A stretch of 64,000 nt of DNA from Trichosphaerium sp. ATCC 40318 (GCA_038496445.1 JALMLS010000253.1:62001-126000); one strand, 5' to 3'. Numbered from the stretch's first letter, positions 822 through 45,300 are shown. Program-made: numbers and translations. The notes: a model not told the origin generated them from the sequence alone.

Positions 822-2408
822 ATGGAACTACCAACAGAAGTGACTTTACAAGTGTTTTTATCTTTGGACATAGAATCCTTGATTGCGTGCAGTTTTGTAT
901 GTAGGAGTACGCATAAATAACATGTCATGATGCCCTACGGTGCTAACAATAGAAGTTTGGAGTACTATTTCCCGTGATAACCACGTTTGGTACCAACAAT
1001 GTAAAGTAGTCGGCGTGTACGCTTTTAACGCGTAAAAAACAACGTTTAACATACTTCTCTACCAGATTAAGCGATGACGCTGTCAAAATGAATCACAACG
1101 TATCCTACAAGGAAGAGTACAAGGTCAATTACGCTTTAAACTCATTATTGTAAACTAATTATTTAAATAGTTTTATAGTCGCCCAAAGTATGGCATAGTA
1201 GTATTAGATGGTCACCAGTTGCAATGTATAGGGATTACAAGGGATAAAGCGAGAGTAAGTGTTAGTTTAAGAAATAAATTAAATAAAATTCAACAAAACT
1301 TTCAGGTTGTTGCAAGTCTCGTTATCGATCTTCCTTTAATCGATTTTCGGAACCTAACAGGTACCCTCAAGCTTACTACATTGCTTTGAGTATAAATTTG
1401 ATGAATGTTAACGAATATTAGATGCTTCTCTGCTAGTAGAACTGGATGATTACTTCACACAAGCAGTTGCTTTAATAAATAAAGTTTTTAGTAGTTTAAA
1501 GGTACCATTACGTATGACTTGTCCTTTTATAATTTTTATATCATCACGTGATTATATTGACATTGTTCATTTTTATTATAGCGTGTACATGGGATCTCAT
1601 CTGGAGTACATAATGTCCTATCAGTTAAAACATCTGTTGCAATTCTTGAGCGAAATATTACAAATCATAATGTGTGTATAGAAGTTGACAAAGAGGGTTA
1701 TGATGGTCTCCAATTAGTACTGACATTTTCGGTATTCAAGCGTATTAATTACATGTATAGGTTCTTGCTTCATCTAAGGTCCAAGAATTCTTACCTCCAT
1801 GGATAAAAGACGAAGTGATACAATTGAACAACTTTTTTGAATGTTATGAAAAACCTGCTCGATGTTGTTGTTTTGGCATTGAGGTATTGTCGAGGTTTTT
1901 ACAAACACTATGACCTTATTTATGTTATAATAGGATACATTAGATGCTATGAGAGAAGGTAAGCAATATAAAACAAGTGTAGTAGGAGTGTAACGTTTGT
2001 ATTAGGGAAATTAGCAACTATTCTAGTACACTGTAATATTAAGCTTACAACTGTTGTTTTGGACAATCCTGAGGGTACACTTTTTGGAGTTTTTGACAGT
2101 AGTGTTGTTATATTGACGCGCATTTAGATGCTGGAAATGGTGAAAGGAGTGTAGTACATTTGCATACTGCCTATGCTTGGAAACATATAAAAGAAGGGAA
2201 CTATGTAAGAAGAGATGAGATAACACCAATCAAGAGTCAAATGCCTTTTATTGTTTGGTTATCACGTGAAAAACAAGATAATGTTTTAATCCAAATAATC
2301 ACAGATCGTTTTAAGAATAGTAAAAAGTTTGTAACTGCTATGCACGGGATTGGTGGTATATTTAAAAGAAAAGAAGAACATATAAGAAATGAACTAACTA
2401 ATAAATGA
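822..2408 (+). CDS. F-box protein fused to eRF1-like M and C domains, lacking the N domain and GGQ (~351 aa, 11 exons)
   Basis: Exons 822-906, 956(or 953)-1016, 1066-1123, 1171-1254, 1306-1360, 1422-1501, 1582-1716, 1761-1883, 1934-1958, 2006-2074 and 2128-2408 join in frame. The N-terminus MELPTEVTLQVFLSLDIESLIACSFVCRIWSTISRDNHVW is an F-box. KYGIVVLDG..VIDLP, CCCFGIEDTLDAMREG, MPFIVWL and IITDR..KKFV..HGIGGIF align with eRF1 KFGFIVIDG..VDLP, YCFGVEDTLKALEMG, MPLLEWF and IVTDK..SQFV..GGIGGIL. Confidence 0.85.
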
Positions 2409-2720
2409 TTGCTCCAACAAGAAATAAGTAACAACGTGATATGTCTTGTATTGCTAGAGCTGAAACCCTTCCAAGAATTTTGGTGAGCATTCTTTTTAAC
2501 TGTTTTGCTTCTACATAAACAGTTTTGCAAGTAGGGATCAGGCGAATAAAGTGACCAAATAAGATCCTCAATGTGAAGATCTAAGCGATGCTCAGAACAC
2601 CAGACATACGACAATGTAATTGGTGCAGCAGATGAAAAAGCACGTGATTGATTGAACACGGACATAAGTTCAGAGAATAAAAGCTTCCTTTTACGTCATA
2701 TCCAGCAACGGCATACAGGT

Positions 2721-3200
2721 ATGAGCGCACTTCCTAAACCGCAACCAGGACAACGTAGGATAGTTGTATCTACAATAATAGATCTACCACCAAAACAAGT
2801 GTGGGCACATGCGAAAAACATGGCAGCTATAATGAAAATATGTGTTCCGCGTAATAGAGTGTGGTGGGAAAAGAAAGAAAGCGAAAAAACTCTTCACGGT
2901 AATTTAAGGTTCATAATGAAACGTAAGGAAGGTTCTCTGGACGTAACACATATTGATGAAGATGATATGACAGTATACTATAAAATCAATCCACCAGTAC
3001 TTTTCTTTGCTTATTACTTGGGTGCTCTTTCTGTTGTGCCTATAACGTCCCAAAAGAACAAATGTCTTTTATTCCTTGTTCGCAATATCTCGTACGTTGA
3101 AGGGATGGGACTTGATGTACACGAAACGTTTATAAAGGCTACAAACATGGAGTTTGCCATGATAAAAAAGGCTATCGAAGCTATGCACTCTAAATTATAG
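2721..3200 (+). CDS. SRPBCC/START-like (polyketide cyclase-like) protein with peroxisomal PTS1
   Basis: Intronless ORF. IVVSTIIDLPPKQVW resembles the SRPBCC N-terminal motif. The protein ends in -SKL*. Confidence 0.65.
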   Translation: MSALPKPQPGQRRIVVSTIIDLPPKQVWAHAKNMAAIMKICVPRNRVWWEKKESEKTLHGNLRFIMKRKEGSLDVTHIDEDDMTVYYKINPPVLFFAYYLGALSVVPITSQKNKCLLFLVRNISYVEGMGLDVHETFIKATNMEFAMIKKAIEAMHSKL

Positions 3201-28474: not shown

Positions 28475-29555
28475 ATGCCAAGGCTGACAGCTCAATTAGT
28501 TTGGTCTTCACCAGCTTTTGTTAATCCGCTTAAAGACCGTGAATTAGACTTACGGGGTATCCTGAATGGCTTAGAGAAGTCTATATTTTGGTTTGTATTT
28601 TTTCTGCATACAAGCGCGTTTTTTTATTGTTCTTGCCGCTGCTACTAATCCTTAACTCACTAAAGGTAACGGTATAGCGCAAATTGAAAATTTAGGTGCA
28701 ACAGAGGTGAGCATTTCAAAACAACAAAATCAAAACTCAAATTGCGTTTTTATTCCACTCAACAACGACCTCATCGATTATTCAGAACCAATTCGATACA
28801 ATAGACCTATCAGACAACCAAATTACGCTACTAGATGGCTTTCCTCTCTTGAGTAGGTTAACGTCCATTTTTATGAACAACAACAAGGTAGCAAGAGTAG
28901 CAGCAGGCCTTGGAGAGTGTACGCAAGAAAAAAGAAGCAAAATTGTGACACTGACAACAAATGTAGCAATCCCAGCGCTTGAAACTTTGGTACTCACAAA
29001 TAACAGTGTCGTCAATTTGGCGGACTTGGATGCTTTGGCAGAGTTTAAAAAATTAGAGATGTTAAGTCTGCTTCAGAACCCCGTACAGCAGAAAAAACAC
29101 TATAGATTATATTTAATACATAAAATACCATCATTGCGTGTATTAGATTTCAGAAAAGTGCGACAAAGGGTGCGTAAAATAAAAATCAAAAAAAAATTCA
29201 AAAAAAAAGCAGTTTGTTGAGCTTCAACCGCTCTCTTTTTATTTCTCTTTATTGCGTGTTAATATTATTCAGGAGCGAGAAGCTGCTGCATCACTATTTG
29301 GTGGCGAAGATGGCGGTGACCTTGAACAAGCCATTCAAAAGAATAAAACAGCTATTGATGCTGATGCTCTAACGCCTGCTCTACGCAAAAAGATTCAAGT
29401 GCGTTTTATTGTACGACTTGTTGTAGTATTAAACCGTTTTTTCTTTTCAGGAACGTATTAAGAGTGTTAAAACAATGGCTGAGATGTCTGAGCTTGAACA
29501 CGCTTTAAAGACAGGAAAATTAACAAAAGAGCTCAAGAAGCAACTAGAACAATAA
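28475..29555 (+). CDS. SNRPA1: U2 snRNP protein A' (LRR)
   Basis: MPRLTAQLV..FVNPLKDRELDLRG..IENLGATENQFDTIDLSDN..GFPLLSRL..NNN and NPVQQKKHYRLYLIHKIPSLRVLDFRKV. Confidence 0.95.
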
Positions 29556-34055: not shown

Positions 34056-34519
34056 GAACCAAACAAAAGAATACTAAATATTTTTTTGGCGAATACACAT
34101 GCATCTGTGATTTTTTTTGGCTTTATGGAGCGGCAAAATATTGGATTAGTTACCACCACGTGATAAATTGGCTTGATTCTACAAGAGAAAAGAAAAAACT
34201 TTTAGACTTCCCGCGAACTGTGAATCTTTTTTTTTATGGTTGGGTATATAAACTAAGAGATAAAGAAAAATATACGCGTTATGGATATGATAATAACACT
34301 TGTAAAAATTGTACAACAGAATAGATTATTCTTGATTTTATTTTTTCCCAGCGTTTTTTGAGTTTGGCATTTTGGTTCGAAGATCTAAAACTTTCAGTAG
34401 TTCTGTGAAAGCTGGAAGATAAAAACATCATCCAGGGTTTTCAACCAGGGCACAATTTGTTCATTTTTTTTCGAATTAAAAGACGTCCAACCAAACACGA
34501 CAATAACCCGCCAAAAAAG

Positions 34520-35203
34520 ATGATGATACAGACGTTCACGAAGGGTTTAATGAAGATGAAAGGAAAAGGAAGGTGTCAGGGGTGCGACAAATCGTTTATT
34601 CATACAAAAGCTCAAAACCACGTCGAATCATGCCAAGATGCGTATTCTCTTCCAGAACGATCATCTGGCGTTAAAGGATTTCTTATTCGAATAATTGATT
34701 GCGACAATCGAGCATCTGCCTTCTGGCTTTACATTACAATACCCTCAAACGCAACCTTTAAGAAACTGGACGATTATCTGCGAGATACTTGGGTTGAATG
34801 CTGTGGTCACTTGAGTAGCTTCGAAGTAGACGACACACCGATAGAAACACATGTTGATCTTCGCATTGACGCAAGAGCTCGACCTATGACGACAAAGCTG
34901 TCTACACTTCTACGCGAAGGTCTCAGGTTCTGTTATGTGTACGATTATGGGACTCCTACCAAACTTATCCTTGAGGTGCTATCTGTAGATGCTCAATGTA
35001 ATCCTGACAGGGTTGTAACTCTTATGAGAAACATTTTACCTTCGTATAAATGCTATGAATGTAGAAAAAAAGCAACAATTATTTGTCAAGTTTGCTACGA
35101 GAATATCTGCAAGTCTTGCTTAGATGATCATGATTGTGATGAAGAACAGTTTATAGAGATATGTAATTCACCACGTTCTGGTGTTTGTGGTTATGAGGGA
35201 TGA
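34520..35203 (+). CDS. Intronless pRiA4b ORF3-like (TnpR-like) protein with Cys-rich Zn-binding ends
   Basis: ATFKKLDDYLRDTWVECCGHLSSF, YVYDYGTPT, MRN, CYEC..CQVC..CKSC and NSPRSGVCGYEG match the prokaryotic family pattern. Single exon. Confidence 0.8.
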   Translation: MMIQTFTKGLMKMKGKGRCQGCDKSFIHTKAQNHVESCQDAYSLPERSSGVKGFLIRIIDCDNRASAFWLYITIPSNATFKKLDDYLRDTWVECCGHLSSFEVDDTPIETHVDLRIDARARPMTTKLSTLLREGLRFCYVYDYGTPTKLILEVLSVDAQCNPDRVVTLMRNILPSYKCYECRKKATIICQVCYENICKSCLDDHDCDEEQFIEICNSPRSGVCGYEG

Positions 35204-35766: not shown

Positions 35767-37559
35767 ATGGCCAAAATACTATTTTTCGCTGCGCTATGTA
35801 TTGCTACTACTATTAACGCACTGTGCGTATCTCCAGACCTAAGTTTCTCAAGTTGGTGGAGGTTTGAGTCGATTGTAAACAATACATTTGACACAATAGA
35901 TTCACGCATTGGTACCATTACAGGGGTTCCTGGTGCTGACTTTTCTCAAGCAGAAGTACGGAACTTCTCTTATTTTATTTTCTTTCAGATTGGCTTAAAT
36001 ACCTCCGTAAGGGTCGTGTCGGTAGTGGATTACGATTGGGCGGTACCTCTTCGATAGTAGCTGAGAATGATGGCATATTTAGCGCAGATCAAGGTATTGA
36101 AATTAGCAACAACTTATAACACCAATCCGCCTCACAGGAAGCTTCAGTGTTGAGATGTGGGTATATGTAGAACCTCCAGGAAGACAACAGTATCTTATTC
36201 ATCACGAATCTGACAAATCAGGCTTCAGCTTATATCTCCTTGACACCAATGAATTGGTATTAGGTGCTTTTTTTTGTATGTGCCTAGCAAGAATACTAAT
36301 GACAGCTTTACTTACGCTCTACTCAGATAATCAGGCTCCATTTAGTGCCAGTATTATTCCGTTAAATACTAGCACTTGGAGTCACGTGGGCGTCTCCTTT
36401 GATTGGTATTTTCTTCGTTCTTTTAGTGTAAACTAATTATCATACTTTATAGGAACAAAAGCACTAATCGAGGAGAATACTTTGGGTACTTGAGTGCGAC
36501 CACAAGTTAATAGTCGGAACTTAATCTTATGTATAGATGGCATTGAGTATAGGGTAGCTTCATCTAGCGGTATTCGAATTATAACAAACAGCAGTACAAT
36601 GTTCTTTCTTGGTTCCAATAATAAAGCCGAAGAACGATTCAATGGTACCATGGATGAGGTATTGCTGAATGTCTTTATACTCATATAATAGGTTTGTCTA
36701 GGTTACTTTTTATAAAGGTATTGCACTAAACGAGACACAAATGCAAGAGATCTATAGCGCAGGTGAGAAGACAGTTAACAACACTTAATTTGACTATTTG
36801 TTGAGGAGTAAACGGAAAGTGCTTACCAACCTCACCTCCAACTGAAACACCAACAACGAATCCTGATGAGCCAAGTACGGAACCAATTACAACTACAGAT
36901 GTACCAACTATACCAGAAGTGCCTACAGAGCAAGGCACGTGGTAGCTAGAGACTATCATCTTTCCTGATATTGGTAGTGTGCAATGGCGACAAGCTTCTA
37001 GGTGCTGAGTGTAACAATACTGATGGTGTTTGGGTTGTCGATAAGGATATTGTGATTCAGTCTACAACGAATATTCGTATTGATAGTTCAATTATATTTC
37101 AAGGTAATCAATCACATTTTTGACTTTTGCACATGATTAATCAAATAAATCAAAGGCAACGTAAATGTGGCGGATACTATAACATTCCTCATTTCTTCAA
37201 TGGTAACGCTCGTATTTCAAAAATGTCCAACTTTCAATGACACCCTCAACATCATCGTCACAGAAGTATCTGAATCCGTTCATACACTCCTCACAATTCC
37301 ATCGAATTGTGATGTAACGATCATTGAACAAACAACAGTGACAACTGATGTTGAAGATGAATGTAATGACTTTTCGCGTATAGAAACAAAAACAAAGCTG
37401 TCTATACTGTGGTCAGTCAATGATGGATGTAATGATAGCGGTCTGAGCGGTGGTGTTATTGCTGGTATTGCTGTTGCTGTTGTTTTTATTGTTGTGGCTA
37501 TAACTGCAAGTTTAATATACTTTCTTACATTCCACAAGAAGAGATCCTTTGTCATTTAA
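35767..37559 (+). CDS. Type I membrane protein with LamG/concanavalin-A-like domain
   Basis: Signal peptide; SWWRFE, FSVEMWV, TWSHVGVSFD, FNGTMDEV and EIYSAGVNGKC motifs; Pro/Thr stalk; TM GVIAGIAVAVVFIVVAITASLIYFL. Confidence 0.85.
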
Positions 37560-39624: not shown

Positions 39625-41516
39625 TCAAGGCTTTGACAGAGATTTCATCATGTGACAAAGACCGACCACTAACTCACTTGAAGTGGAATCAACAGTTATT
39701 CCTCCAACCTTAAAACAAGATATCCTCAATTCTCCATTTCTATACCATTCCTTGTAAGTCCCAGTCTCTTTTCCGTTATATTTTGAAGCTACTCTATGTA
39801 CATTTCCGTTATCAAACCACTCTGTTGTTAATCCATGTTCATGACCTTTCTTCATATAACATTCAAGCTTTTTTTTACCATCCTCGTACCACTCTTTATA
39901 CTCTCCATCAAAAAGGTTATCATAACAGTGTGTATCAATCATGATCTGTCCATTTTTATGGTACTTTTTATAACGTCCATTGTGCTTGTCATTTGACATT
40001 TTGGTTGAGTCAACTTTGATATTACCATTCTTGTACCACTGTCTGTATTTTCCTCTGTATTTACCACGTTTCTTTGTGTACTCATACTTTAACTGTCCGT
40101 TGTCATGCCACTCTTTATACAGTCCGTTATGAACACCTTTTATCAATGAACATTGACAACAAAGTTGTCCGTTATCATGCCATTCTTCATAGAAACCATC
40201 ATTCAGTCCATCAATCTGAAAACAGCGTTTTGACATTACACCATTTGAATAGTACTCCAGATAAGTTCCATTGGTCTTATCATTTCTTTTTGTTGTATCT
40301 TCATTTAACTGTCCATTATCGTAATATGATTTAAACTCTCCTTCTTGGATACCATCCTTCATATAACAGTCAAAATGAAGTACTCCATTTTCGTAGTATT
40401 CAAGATAATGTCCATTCGTCTTATTTTCTTTCTTTGTTGTATCTATCTTTATTTGATCCCCTTCTTTGTAGTATTCTTTAAAATAACCATTCTCTTTACC
40501 CTCACGCATCATACAGTCGAAATGGAGGTGTCCGTTATCATGAAACTGTAAATACTTTCCATCTTCTTTACCGTCTTTTGTCTCGTACTTGAAATGTACT
40601 TTTCCATTTTCAAACCATTCAATGTACTCTCCGCTTGTTTCACCTTTTTTCATAAACGCCTTTATCTTAGGTTGGCCACAGTCATACCACTCTAAGTAAA
40701 GACCGTGCATTTTACCATGCTTCATGTAACACAAGATTTTTTTTCTTCCATTTTCATGCCAATGTCTTCCAATACCTTCAGAAAAACAGTTAGACGGTGA
40801 TAATACAATAGTTAAGAAGCACGTGAAAATAGATATTAGTCAAAAAACTGATGATACTGCCAACCACTGACATACGACACAACGCTAATAGCGCCGTATC
40901 GTATGCTGTGCATGAAAAGTGAAAAACGGACTTTTTTTGGCTGATCTTTGAGAAGAAAACGCTTTTTTTAGGCTTTAAAAGCTTTGGGAGTAAAAATGAA
41001 TGGTGTCTTACCTTGCTCTCTTTGTTTGCGCATAGTATAAACCGATAACAGTTGACCGTTCTTGTAATACTCGTAGAACTCGTCTTCTTGTAGGTTATCC
41101 TTCATAAACCACTTGTACTCTAGTTCGCCTGTTTTGTACCAGTTTCTAACGACTCCTTCTGCGGACCCGTTAACATAGTAACGAATACCGCGTAGTTGGC
41201 CGTTTTTATGCCATCTACGCCATTCGCCGTGTTTTTCCAAGCGATTATTAAAGTGGGTTTTTACAGCGGCTGTTTTACATAGCGTGTGCCTATTAACGTG
41301 TGACTACTGCGTTTAGGGTGCATAGTTTCAATGACATACCATTTGGTGAATATCTCAGCGTCAAATGAGCTTATAACCCTTTGTACATCTTGAGGTAAGT
41401 CCATTAATGCTGTTAATTGCGAAATACAAGGTACTATATCATATGAGTTATGTACTTTGAAATAAAAGTAATTTTCAAAAAAAAAAAAAAAATCGAATCG
41501 TACACTCTTTGCACAT
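39625..41516 (-). CDS. MORN-variant (YwqK-like) repeat protein with degenerate N-terminal F-box-like segment
   Basis: Many ~24-aa repeats of the form G.Y.EW(Y/H)(D/E)NGQL. The spliced N-terminus reads MCKELHNSYDIVPCISQLTALMDLPQDVQRVISSFDAEIFTKWHTLCK. Confidence 0.85.
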
Positions 41517-42358: not shown

Positions 42359-45300
42359 ATGCATCCTTTAATTGTTCTTTTAATACTGGCAATGTGTACT
42401 TGTGCTTTTTCACTCTAATGTCAATTAGATCACTTGGTATAATTTGAGTACAGAATTGACTTTAAATAAGTTCTCGTATAGATTACCATAAGACAAAAAG
42501 GATGCTATACCACATGTTGACTTGGTAGTACACTACAGTTACAAACCTTTAGCAATTTACCTCAAAATTTCTTTTTGAATGGGGTACTTGCAGGATTCTG
42601 TATCTCGTTGAAACGTAGTCATAAAATGAGGTAATGAGATTGAATTACAAACCTTAAGAAAGTCAAAATACTCTTGAATGAGTACTCCTGAAATTTGCTT
42701 TTATACCCTTCAGTTATTTGTACTTCCCTATAATAGCGATGCTACATGTACTTCTGTAGAGTTGAGTCATGGGAAGTGACAACAATACCCGAAATTACCT
42801 GACAACCCAATACCCATGGGTATTAAAAGACTTTCTCTGAATAAAGTTAAGCGGGGTTTTTTTAAAGCCGGAGTTTGACTTGACGTAGCAACACTGACTT
42901 CCCAATCAAATCAAAGTTGCAGCAGATGCACCTTCACGTCGTGGTAATATCAACAGTGTTGCTTTCAAGCGCCTACGCTCAAATTGGTACAACTGCAAAC
43001 CGAAGTTCTTCACTGTTGTCTTTTTCTCGCCTAACGCTCACATAGTCAACGGAGATACTGGGAGATGCTTCTGGAGAAATAAAATGGATGATTTCCCTAT
43101 TCTCGCAAATGATTCAGATGTCTCGGGGCCAAGCTTACCCGGCTTCGTTGTAGGAGGAGGCAGCGACTATGTAATAACCAAAACGCCAGAATCGGCGGTA
43201 GTTACGCTAAGTATACTACCAGGCATTTTCTCGCTTGTAGTAGATGTAGGCGTTGGTGGTGGTATTTTGATGCCACCAAGCGCAATCAGCTGCAATTTTA
43301 CTACTGGAAACGTTCAAGGTAAGTCCTTTTTTTTTTTTGTTTTTGCAAGTTGTTTTTCGATCCATCACTTCCTCGCATTCAACCTATGAATATAGTATTA
43401 ACACGCTCTAGTATTTGAACTACAAAATCAGAACTATCCCCTCCCATTAGCAAACTTTACGTTCTCACCATCCTCGTTTTCGTATGAAACTTTTTTCATG
43501 ACTTCACAAGAAATCCACATGTGAAACAATTTGTATTTTGTCGAGTTGCTAATGCGCTTTTAGGTTTGATTTACCTGAGCAAAACCTAACTGGGGCATTC
43601 TTATATAATGCTACATTTAAAACTTCAAGTAGCGGACCGCCTGTAGCTCCTTTTAATATGCCAACATTTCCTGTCTATGTTTCTGAAGTGATGACAAAAC
43701 CATCAGCTTCGAAAGGGCAGTACATTGAGATTTTTAATGGAGCTCTTGATAAGACATTCTCACCTGATGGATGTGTACTTGAATATACATCAGATATGGG
43801 ACCTCAGTCTGTATCGATAACTGCAACAACAGTTATGAATGTTGGAGATTTCTTTGTTCTTGGAAATTCAGATGATTCTGCAACGAATGGTGGGATTACT
43901 GTGGACTTTGTTTATTCACAACCTATTGTATTTGATCAACAAGGACATGGTAGTTTTAATATAACTTGCTCTGGACCTCAAATAGTTGATATAAGAATGA
44001 ATATCGATTCTTCTTTTCCAACTCCTGTAATGGGCACGTGAAAGAAATTTTTGATTTGATTTTTTTCTTTCTTTTACTCACTTGCTTTTTTAATACGTCG
44101 TCACTTGTTCGTATTCAAATCATTACGTTATATACATTACATACTTAATCCGTCAATTTGGTTTCTCTTGATTGGCTCATAAAATAGCTGTTACGACTTT
44201 GTCGTTCCTATTTTCTTCTGTTTATTTTTTTTCTACACCCTTGTGGTTTTACTTTATTGATTGCCATAGGCACTTCAATTCAATATGATGGTGAGTTCTT
44301 GAACTCTATGTCTCCTCCAGAATACGAAATGGGAACAGCTTGGTGTAAAAGCTTTATCCAGCAGACAAATATATTTGGTACTCCGGGTGCTACAAACGGA
44401 TTTTGTTCAGCTGCACCCACTGCTGGAGTAATTCCAACAACAATGGCCCCTACTGTGATAGAAACAATTGCTCCTACTGTAGCCCCTACTGTAGCACCAA
44501 TACCGAATGTACATGAAAACTTATGACAAGAAAACGTTTAAACCAAAAAAAGTCAAACTAAACATGTTGCTAGATTACCCCAAGGGTCGATTGTGTCATG
44601 GGAACACTTGACCCGAACAAGTTTGTAGCGATCCTAGGATGGAGTACTGAGGTATAATACGCCACTTAGTGTTCCTATTGTATTAATGTATGCACTATAG
44701 GGTGTATTCAACATCCCTATTGGCGAAAACAATATGCTTTCTCGCACCATTGGAAACCCCTCAGACCAACCTACTTTCTTTAACAGTAATCCTCCTTTCT
44801 TTCCTGCTACGGGACAATTCCGTGCAGAATTCGATGGGCAAGAAACTAGTTGGACACTTGGAAGAGGTATAGTTACATTCATTGGAAACGATCCAGCAAC
44901 AACGTGTATCGATGATGGTGCGTTATTAATTTTCTCAAAAAATTCTCAGTTTTTGTTTTCTTATTCATAAAAAAAAGACTTTCACAAGCTTCATAAACTC
45001 TGTATATCCTGTTCTATTTGTTATGGTAGAGTTGAATGATAAAGTTTTTGGAAACGGAGAACGTTGTGTTGAAGAAATGTTGATTTTTCTTCTTGGCATA
45101 GCTGTTTGCTGATTTTGTTATTTAGAAGTTACCATAGACGCACAAACAGATCAACTTGTCAGTAGCATGACTGTACTAACACAGATTGGTAATTTTATAG
45201 CTACAGAAGCTGGTTTTTTAATAAGTGATGTTAATTCTGTTACGCAAAGAACAACGAAAAAACGTCAAGCATCAACAACTGTCAGTGTTTTTATTGCAAC

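Follow-up and report, generated by a model that had tools for sequence, protein, structure and literature searches.

The question raised by the plus-strand locus at positions 822-2408 is what can be encoded by a gene that begins like an F-box protein and ends like the eukaryotic release factor eRF1, and what such a protein could still do. The locus lies in a stretch of 64,000 nucleotides from Trichosphaerium sp. ATCC 40318, which was analysed over its whole length and is referred to below as the window. The initial annotation had read the gene as an F-box fused to an eRF1 that has lost both decoding and catalysis. There is little doubt that this architecture, an F-box followed by degenerate eRF1 M and C domains, is real and unusual.

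Gene model, transcripts and genomic setting

The gene model comprises the following features.

822-2408, plus strand: whole gene, 11 exons with a 351-aa open reading frame, ending in TGA at 2406-2408; splice model free of stop codons
822-906, 953-1016, 1066-1123, 1171-1254, 1306-1360 and 1422-1501, plus strand: exons 1-6
1582-1731, 1779-1883, 1934-1958, 2006-2074 and 2128-2408, plus strand: exons 7-11
1959-2127, plus strand: introns 9 (1959-2005) and 10 (2075-2127), removed in one assembled contig from run X1
2400-2405, plus strand: AATAAA, read from the sequence, abutting the stop codon on its 5' side

The start codon at 822 is the first ATG past an in-frame stop at 708-710, and the joined coding sequence of 1056 nt gives 351 codons. 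All ten introns of the splice model (46-80 nt) have GT..AG borders, and the claim that the 11 exons join without a stop was borne out. The AATAAA hexamer is likely to be the poly(A) signal. Half of the donors between 907 and 2127 (5 of 10) begin with GTAC (GTACGC twice, GTACCC, GTACCA and GTACAC) rather than reading GTAAGT or GTATGT; none of the ten introns has a U12-type appearance. An antisense ATG-initiated open reading frame of 142 aa (2237-2665, minus strand) lies opposite exon 11 and the 3' flank and is probably spurious, because the plus strand holds the eRF1-homologous coding sequence.

A variant genetic code can be rejected, as reassignment of any stop codon produced no abnormal lengthening of open reading frames across the window, and TAG and TGA both terminate genes. 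Under the standard code the gene at 822-2408 ends in TGA and its neighbour ends in TAG at 3198-3200.

The run search returned one run with a weak match to the gene stretch, and four runs yielded two low-depth contigs of about 150 nt, both from run X1. The first contig (151 nt) aligns to 1939-1956, 2004-2073 and 2127-2189. Intron 10 is removed in it exactly at GT..AG, with 53 nt skipped and at least 63 nt aligned on each side, and intron 9 is removed with weak support, only 18 nt lying on its 5' side. The second contig covers 2263-2414, ending just beyond the stop codon, and its listed differences are 2354 T>C, which is synonymous, and 2358 A>G, an Ile-to-Val change that turns GIGGI into GIGGV. 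The type of run X1 was guessed, and the splicing suggests that it is RNA. With so few contigs, expression is low or rare. RNA confirmation had been called for at the junctions between the F-box and the eRF1-like exons (906-1171). What the RNA contigs confirm is the exon 10-11 junction and, weakly, the exon 9-10 junction; none of the four runs gave a contig over 822-1938, which holds exons 1-8 and the joins of the F-box to the eRF1 part. That join rests on the splice model, because the RNA contigs start only at 1939.

The draft genome of Trichosphaerium has 37.7% GC, 8.7 introns per gene and a mean intron length of 75 bp (Tekle et al. 2023, PMC10521059). The window, with about 36% GC, and the gene at 822-2408, with its ten short introns, fit that published genome well. 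The gene is an apparently intact, lineage-restricted gene of an intron-rich, AT-rich eukaryote.

Several other genes and matches were seen in the window. Directly downstream lies a single-exon gene of 159 aa (2721-3200, plus strand) with a borderline Polyketide_cyc2/SRPBCC match (26.9 bits, cut-off 27.4). No homologue of it was present in a collection of 5.8 billion proteins, nor was there an exact record, which makes it an orphan gene of the lipid-binding fold. An intron-less gene at 39625-40734 (minus strand) encodes a 368-aa protein of MORN_2 (YwqK-type) repeats whose best relatives are bacterial (Bacteroidales, Porphyromonas) and distant, at 29-40% identity. It is a candidate for lateral transfer; MORN repeats are reported to be common among the transferred genes of Trichosphaerium, and F-box and MORN are the commonest domains among its giant-virus-derived genes (PMC10521059). 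A 248-aa open reading frame at 34457-35203 (plus strand) matches PRiA4_ORF3 (plasmid pRiA4b ORF-3-like) with 26.9 bits against a cut-off of 26.6, another bacterial-type domain in a eukaryotic window. The exon at 28849-29220 (plus strand) matches LRR_9 strongly, with 107.8 bits over profile positions 84-165 of 175; the gene it belongs to is probably a housekeeping LRR gene, U2 snRNP A'-like or related. Two further plus-strand stretches match weakly and below threshold: 37167-37559 resembles Giardia VSP (19 bits), and 43658-44041 the Lamin Tail Domain (20 bits).

Domain architecture of the predicted protein

The spliced protein is divided as follows.

822-906 and 953-1016, plus strand: F-box, aa 1-49, exons 1-2, identified with Pfam, exon 2 adding the W...VW end of the motif
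1066-1123, plus strand: linker of about 20 aa at the place of the eRF1 N domain, exon 3
1171-1814, plus strand: M-like region, strongly diverged, aa 70-204, exons 4-7 and the start of exon 8
1327-1429, plus strand, across the intron at 1361-1421: degenerate catalytic loop DLPLIDFRNLTDAS, aa 105-118, located by the alignments
1815-2378, plus strand: eRF1 C (Pelota-type) domain including the minidomain, aa 205-342, exons 8-11, identified by local HMM, hhalign and PDB matches
2346-2360, plus strand: GIGGI motif, aa 332-336, aligned to GIGGI in the GFGGIGGILRY block of eRF1

The N domain of eRF1 carries the NIKS and YxCxxxF stop-codon recognition motifs (eRF1_1). Here the corresponding place is taken by an F-box, as had been claimed. 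The 28 aa of exon 1 alone exceed the curated Pfam gathering scores of both F-box families, with 32.0 bits (E=1e-7, cut-off 24.3) against PF12937 and 27.4 bits (cut-off 20.5) against PF00646, and the W...VW end of the motif was read from the sequence of exon 2. Neither the spliced protein nor any frame of 700-2700 matched the eRF1 N domain (HMM positions 1-139), and hhalign gave a probability of 0.1% for aa 1-70 against eRF1. Exon 3 begins (1066-1080) with LSDD, which is identical to the end of the N-M linker of eRF1 (..ALLSDDSKFGF..), although hhalign did not place the two opposite each other; it may mark the fusion breakpoint or be a coincidence.

For comparison with eRF1, a degenerate DNA pattern for HGRGGQSAxRF was used to obtain giant-virus eRF1 genes, one of which served as query for a set of 120 eRF1 proteins; a local profile HMM was built from 110 of these. 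The whole spliced protein scores 46.2 bits against this HMM (E=4e-12, Z=20000), the best of 200 shuffles scoring 6.0 bits, and hhalign gives 97% against eRF1 over aa 15-349.

Most of this similarity can be located in the C-terminal part. Residues 205-342 score 43.3 bits against HMM positions 282-415, a match that spans the entire C domain and minidomain of eRF1, and hhalign gives 97.5% for the C part alone. When exon 11 was compared with all PDB sequences, the 17 best matches were all eRF1 (E 0.004-0.03), and no Pelota, Dom34 or aRF1 chain was among the matches at E up to 10. Exons 1, 4, 7 and 8, too short as queries, gave no eRF1 or F-box match in the PDB. The Pfam eRF1_3 score of exon 11 alone, which holds under half of the domain, is 15.2 bits and thus below the cut-off of 25.8, and an AlphaFold2 model of the same exon alone has a pLDDT of 45. 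Identity of the C domain to eRF1 is low (median 24%, maximum 27%), and 11 of the 35 near-invariant C-domain columns (at least 95% conserved) are kept; the kept positions include F212, C223, G225, T229, L230, G236, V243, W302, G332 and G334. The C-domain core is the best-conserved part: it keeps FGIEDTL and GIGGI, and part of a hydrophobic patch. Judged from these comparisons the C domain is clearly derived from eRF1, and the claim that it is retained together with GIGGI holds.

The M region had been described as recognisable, which needs qualification. It matches the M domain of eRF1 in length and order, and a global alignment to the M domain of a vertebrate eRF1 has a score of 15, where shuffles give -36 +/- 12.6 (z=4.06; none of 3000 shuffles reached the score). 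When only the M region was compared by hhalign, aa 71-112 aligned with P=0.003, a better result than any of 60 shuffles. A free-end-gap pairwise alignment (z=2.1) was a poor test, and the true global alignment was used instead. In the HMMER comparison with the local eRF1 HMM, however, the region scores only 0.9 bits, which is not significant, although the match falls at the collinear start (SKFGFIVLDG...VDLP in eRF1, PKYGIVVLDG...IDLP here). Residues 70-204 are weakly identifiable as a strongly diverged eRF1 M domain, almost beyond recognition. The expectation that domain profiles would find an F-box, eRF1_2 and eRF1_3 but not eRF1_1 was correct for the F-box and for the missing eRF1_1, and the C domain was found by the local HMM; in the exon-wise Pfam search, however, eRF1_2 had no match on single exons and eRF1_3 stayed below threshold.

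Within the M region, hhalign and the global alignment both place DLPLIDFRNLTDAS where eRF1 has DLPKKHGRGGQSALRF. The loop reads LIDFRNLTDA and has neither Gly-Gly-Gln nor any Gln at all. Neither a hidden GGQ exon nor a remnant of the N domain occurs in any frame of 700-2700, so that the reported loss of GGQ was upheld. The helix that follows the loop has a net charge of -3, against +5 in eRF1. In eRF1 this basic helix lies on rRNA and on the switch region of eRF3. With no stop-codon-reading domain, no GGQ and an acidic helix, the predicted protein therefore cannot terminate translation: both stop-codon decoding and peptide release would be impossible for it, and placement in the peptidyl-transferase centre in the manner of eRF1 or Dom34 is unlikely.

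In eRF1, eRF3 is contacted by Arg192 and Arg203 of the M domain and by Phe291, Ile294, Tyr301, Phe303 and Phe406 of the C domain (Mantsyzov et al., PMC2909394). The equivalents of both arginines, as mapped by alignment, are replaced. Two of the five hydrophobic C-domain contacts are identical (F291 and F303), two are changed conservatively (I294 to Y and F406 to M), and Y301 is changed to C. As judged from the aligned residues, coupling of the M domain to the GTPase is lost and much of the surface character of the C domain is kept.

Relatives, origin and comparison with known systems

Exon 11 was compared exhaustively by phmmer with 1.84 billion representative proteins, and none matched at E<=0.001; this query is short, and eRF1 itself scores about 19 bits with it. 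Viral contigs and metagenome contigs scanned with the same exon held no relative, and tblastn of the spliced protein against the 64-kb window revealed no paralogue. An Atlas feature search with exon 11 returned unnamed clusters only, and a search there for eRF1-like clusters that lack an N domain gave truncated eRF1s, Pelota, and families from archaea and bacteria, all of them devoid of an F-box.

In pairwise phmmer comparisons, cellular eRF1s match the C domain with 38-48 bits, the eRF1s of marseillevirus and the other giant viruses sampled with only 7-18 bits. A giant-virus origin of the eRF1 part is rejected for the viruses sampled, and the viral link raised in the initial annotation is not supported, the domain being far nearer to cellular eRF1. 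The module is therefore taken to come from a cellular-type eRF1 and to have evolved fast afterwards. The ancestor of the C-terminal 280 residues appears to have been a cellular eRF1 whose N domain was lost.

No account of a protein that joins an F-box to eRF1 M and C domains turned up in literature searches, in agreement with the earlier statement that the architecture was undescribed; a related one, however, is known. In Naegleria and some ciliates an F-box is fused to a domain of the VLRF-1 (Vms1-like) clade (Burroughs and Aravind 2019, PMC6514570), and fusion of an F-box to a release-factor-type domain therefore has a precedent. Both are protist proteins with the F-box N-terminal to a domain of the archaeo-eukaryotic release-factor superfamily. 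The VLRF-1 clade, in contrast, derives from bacterial bVLRF-1, is predicted to be active and has a GxuQ-type loop, whereas the gene described here is a derivative of classical eRF1 with a Pelota-type C domain and without the catalytic Gln. Membership in VLRF-1 is not indicated, as the loop holds no Gln (GxuQ/GGxSQ) and the VLRF1 and baeRF Pfam families had no match on any exon, searched exon by exon at E up to 10.

With classical eRF1 (ETF1/Sup45) the predicted protein shares collinear M and C regions, FG(I/V)EDTL, the length of the minidomain and GIGGI. It differs in that the NIKS/YxCxxxF N domain, GGQ, Arg192, Arg203 and the basic helix are all absent, that C-domain identity is 24-27%, and that an F-box stands at the N terminus. 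Dom34/Pelota is likewise a catalytically dead paralogue of the eRF1 superfamily in which the N domain is replaced and the M and C core is kept (PMC6514570), but it has Hbs1 as its partner and probes the A site with an Sm-like N domain, whereas here there are an F-box and a short linker. The F-box at the N terminus and the PDB matches of exon 11, which are to eRF1 with no Pelota or Dom34, place the protein outside Pelota. Generic SCF F-box receptors also have an N-terminal F-box followed by a variable protein-interaction domain; eRF1 M and C domains in the place of the variable domain are found in no literature description.

Possible role and competing explanations

The account preferred here is that of a real, lineage-restricted gene in which a relic of cellular eRF1 has become the recognition module of an SCF receptor; taken as a whole, it is put at an even chance. 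The predicted F-box would dock on Skp1 and Cullin-1, and the eRF1-derived M and C module would recognise the substrates of an SCF ubiquitin ligase. This role as an SCF substrate receptor is considered somewhat probable when taken by itself. The clients would be proteins that normally grip the C domain of eRF1, first of all a GTPase of the eRF3/Hbs1 family and then ABCE1. Such C-domain binders are the most plausible clients because the C-domain core is best conserved; that the client is eRF3, Hbs1 or ABCE1 is speculative and rather unlikely.

A different explanation is that the gene is a by-product: part of eRF1 was duplicated behind an F-box exon pair, and the result is a young chimera of low transcription, without a selected function or already decaying. 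The extreme divergence of the M region would be expected of such a gene, as would a C domain at 24-27% identity that has lost most of the invariant eRF1 positions; there are no relatives in any collection searched, the RNA evidence is very thin, and the F-box is reported to be among the domains most often expanded in the genome of Trichosphaerium (PMC10521059). It is harder to reconcile with an open reading frame of 351 codons that stays open over 11 exons and ten intact introns, when a stop calculated from the composition is expected about every 14 codons. Conservation is uneven, the C core being kept and the catalytic parts gone, which looks more like a change of function than like uniform decay, and the listed differences of the RNA contigs amount to one synonymous and one Ile-to-Val change. 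A functionless by-product is judged unlikely, though it keeps real weight.

The idea of a release-factor mimic, advanced in the initial annotation, is a narrower form of the receptor role. The C domain would capture a free eRF3/Hbs1 GTPase or ABCE1, or the protein would be carried to ribosomes by the GTPase, and the bound partner would be ubiquitylated. The evidence on it is mixed: both M-domain arginines that contact eRF3 are lost, which weakens the idea, and the C-domain contacts set out above are partly kept. It is regarded as unlikely. If true, the mimic would amount to direct proteolytic control of translation termination or ribosome rescue in an amoeba.

A binder of the Dom34 type is improbable. 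In stalled or terminating ribosomes the M and C domains would enter the A site, perhaps delivered by a GTPase of the eRF3/Hbs1 type, and recruit SCF there; as a ribosome quality-control adaptor, it would lead SCF to ubiquitylate ribosomal proteins or nascent chains. The pattern of loss, with no catalytic Gln and a replaced N domain, is shared with Dom34, F-box-VLRF-1 joins an F-box to the Vms1 family, which acts in ribosome quality control in other eukaryotes (PMC6514570), and the C domain and minidomain are of full length. Yet no domain stands in for the N domain that probes the A site, only the linker of about 20 aa; the helix that is basic and binds rRNA in eRF1 is acidic here (-3 against +5); and Arg192 and Arg203, which are needed for coupling to the GTPase, are lost.

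Least probable is a wrong gene model without any fusion, in which exons 1-2 form a tiny F-box gene of their own and Met58 is the first residue of the eRF1-like protein: an in-frame ATG does lie in exon 3 at aa 58 and 822-1938 is without an RNA contig, but the gap between exons 2 and 3 is only 49 nt, with the same GTACGC donor as intron 1, an AG acceptor and the frame kept, and exons 1-2 left unspliced would give a 56-aa peptide with no space for a terminator and a new promoter.

If the gene is non-functional, it would be a clear example of the chimeric genes that arise from F-box expansion in amoebae. If, as in the preferred account, it is functional, a core translation factor stripped of decoding and catalysis would have found a new use in target recognition by a ubiquitin ligase, which would open a new route for proteolytic regulation of termination or ribosome-rescue factors. 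It would also be the second, independent fusion of an F-box to the release-factor superfamily, after F-box-VLRF-1, and a second case would suggest a recurrent coupling of SCF ligases to mimics of A-site factors in protists.
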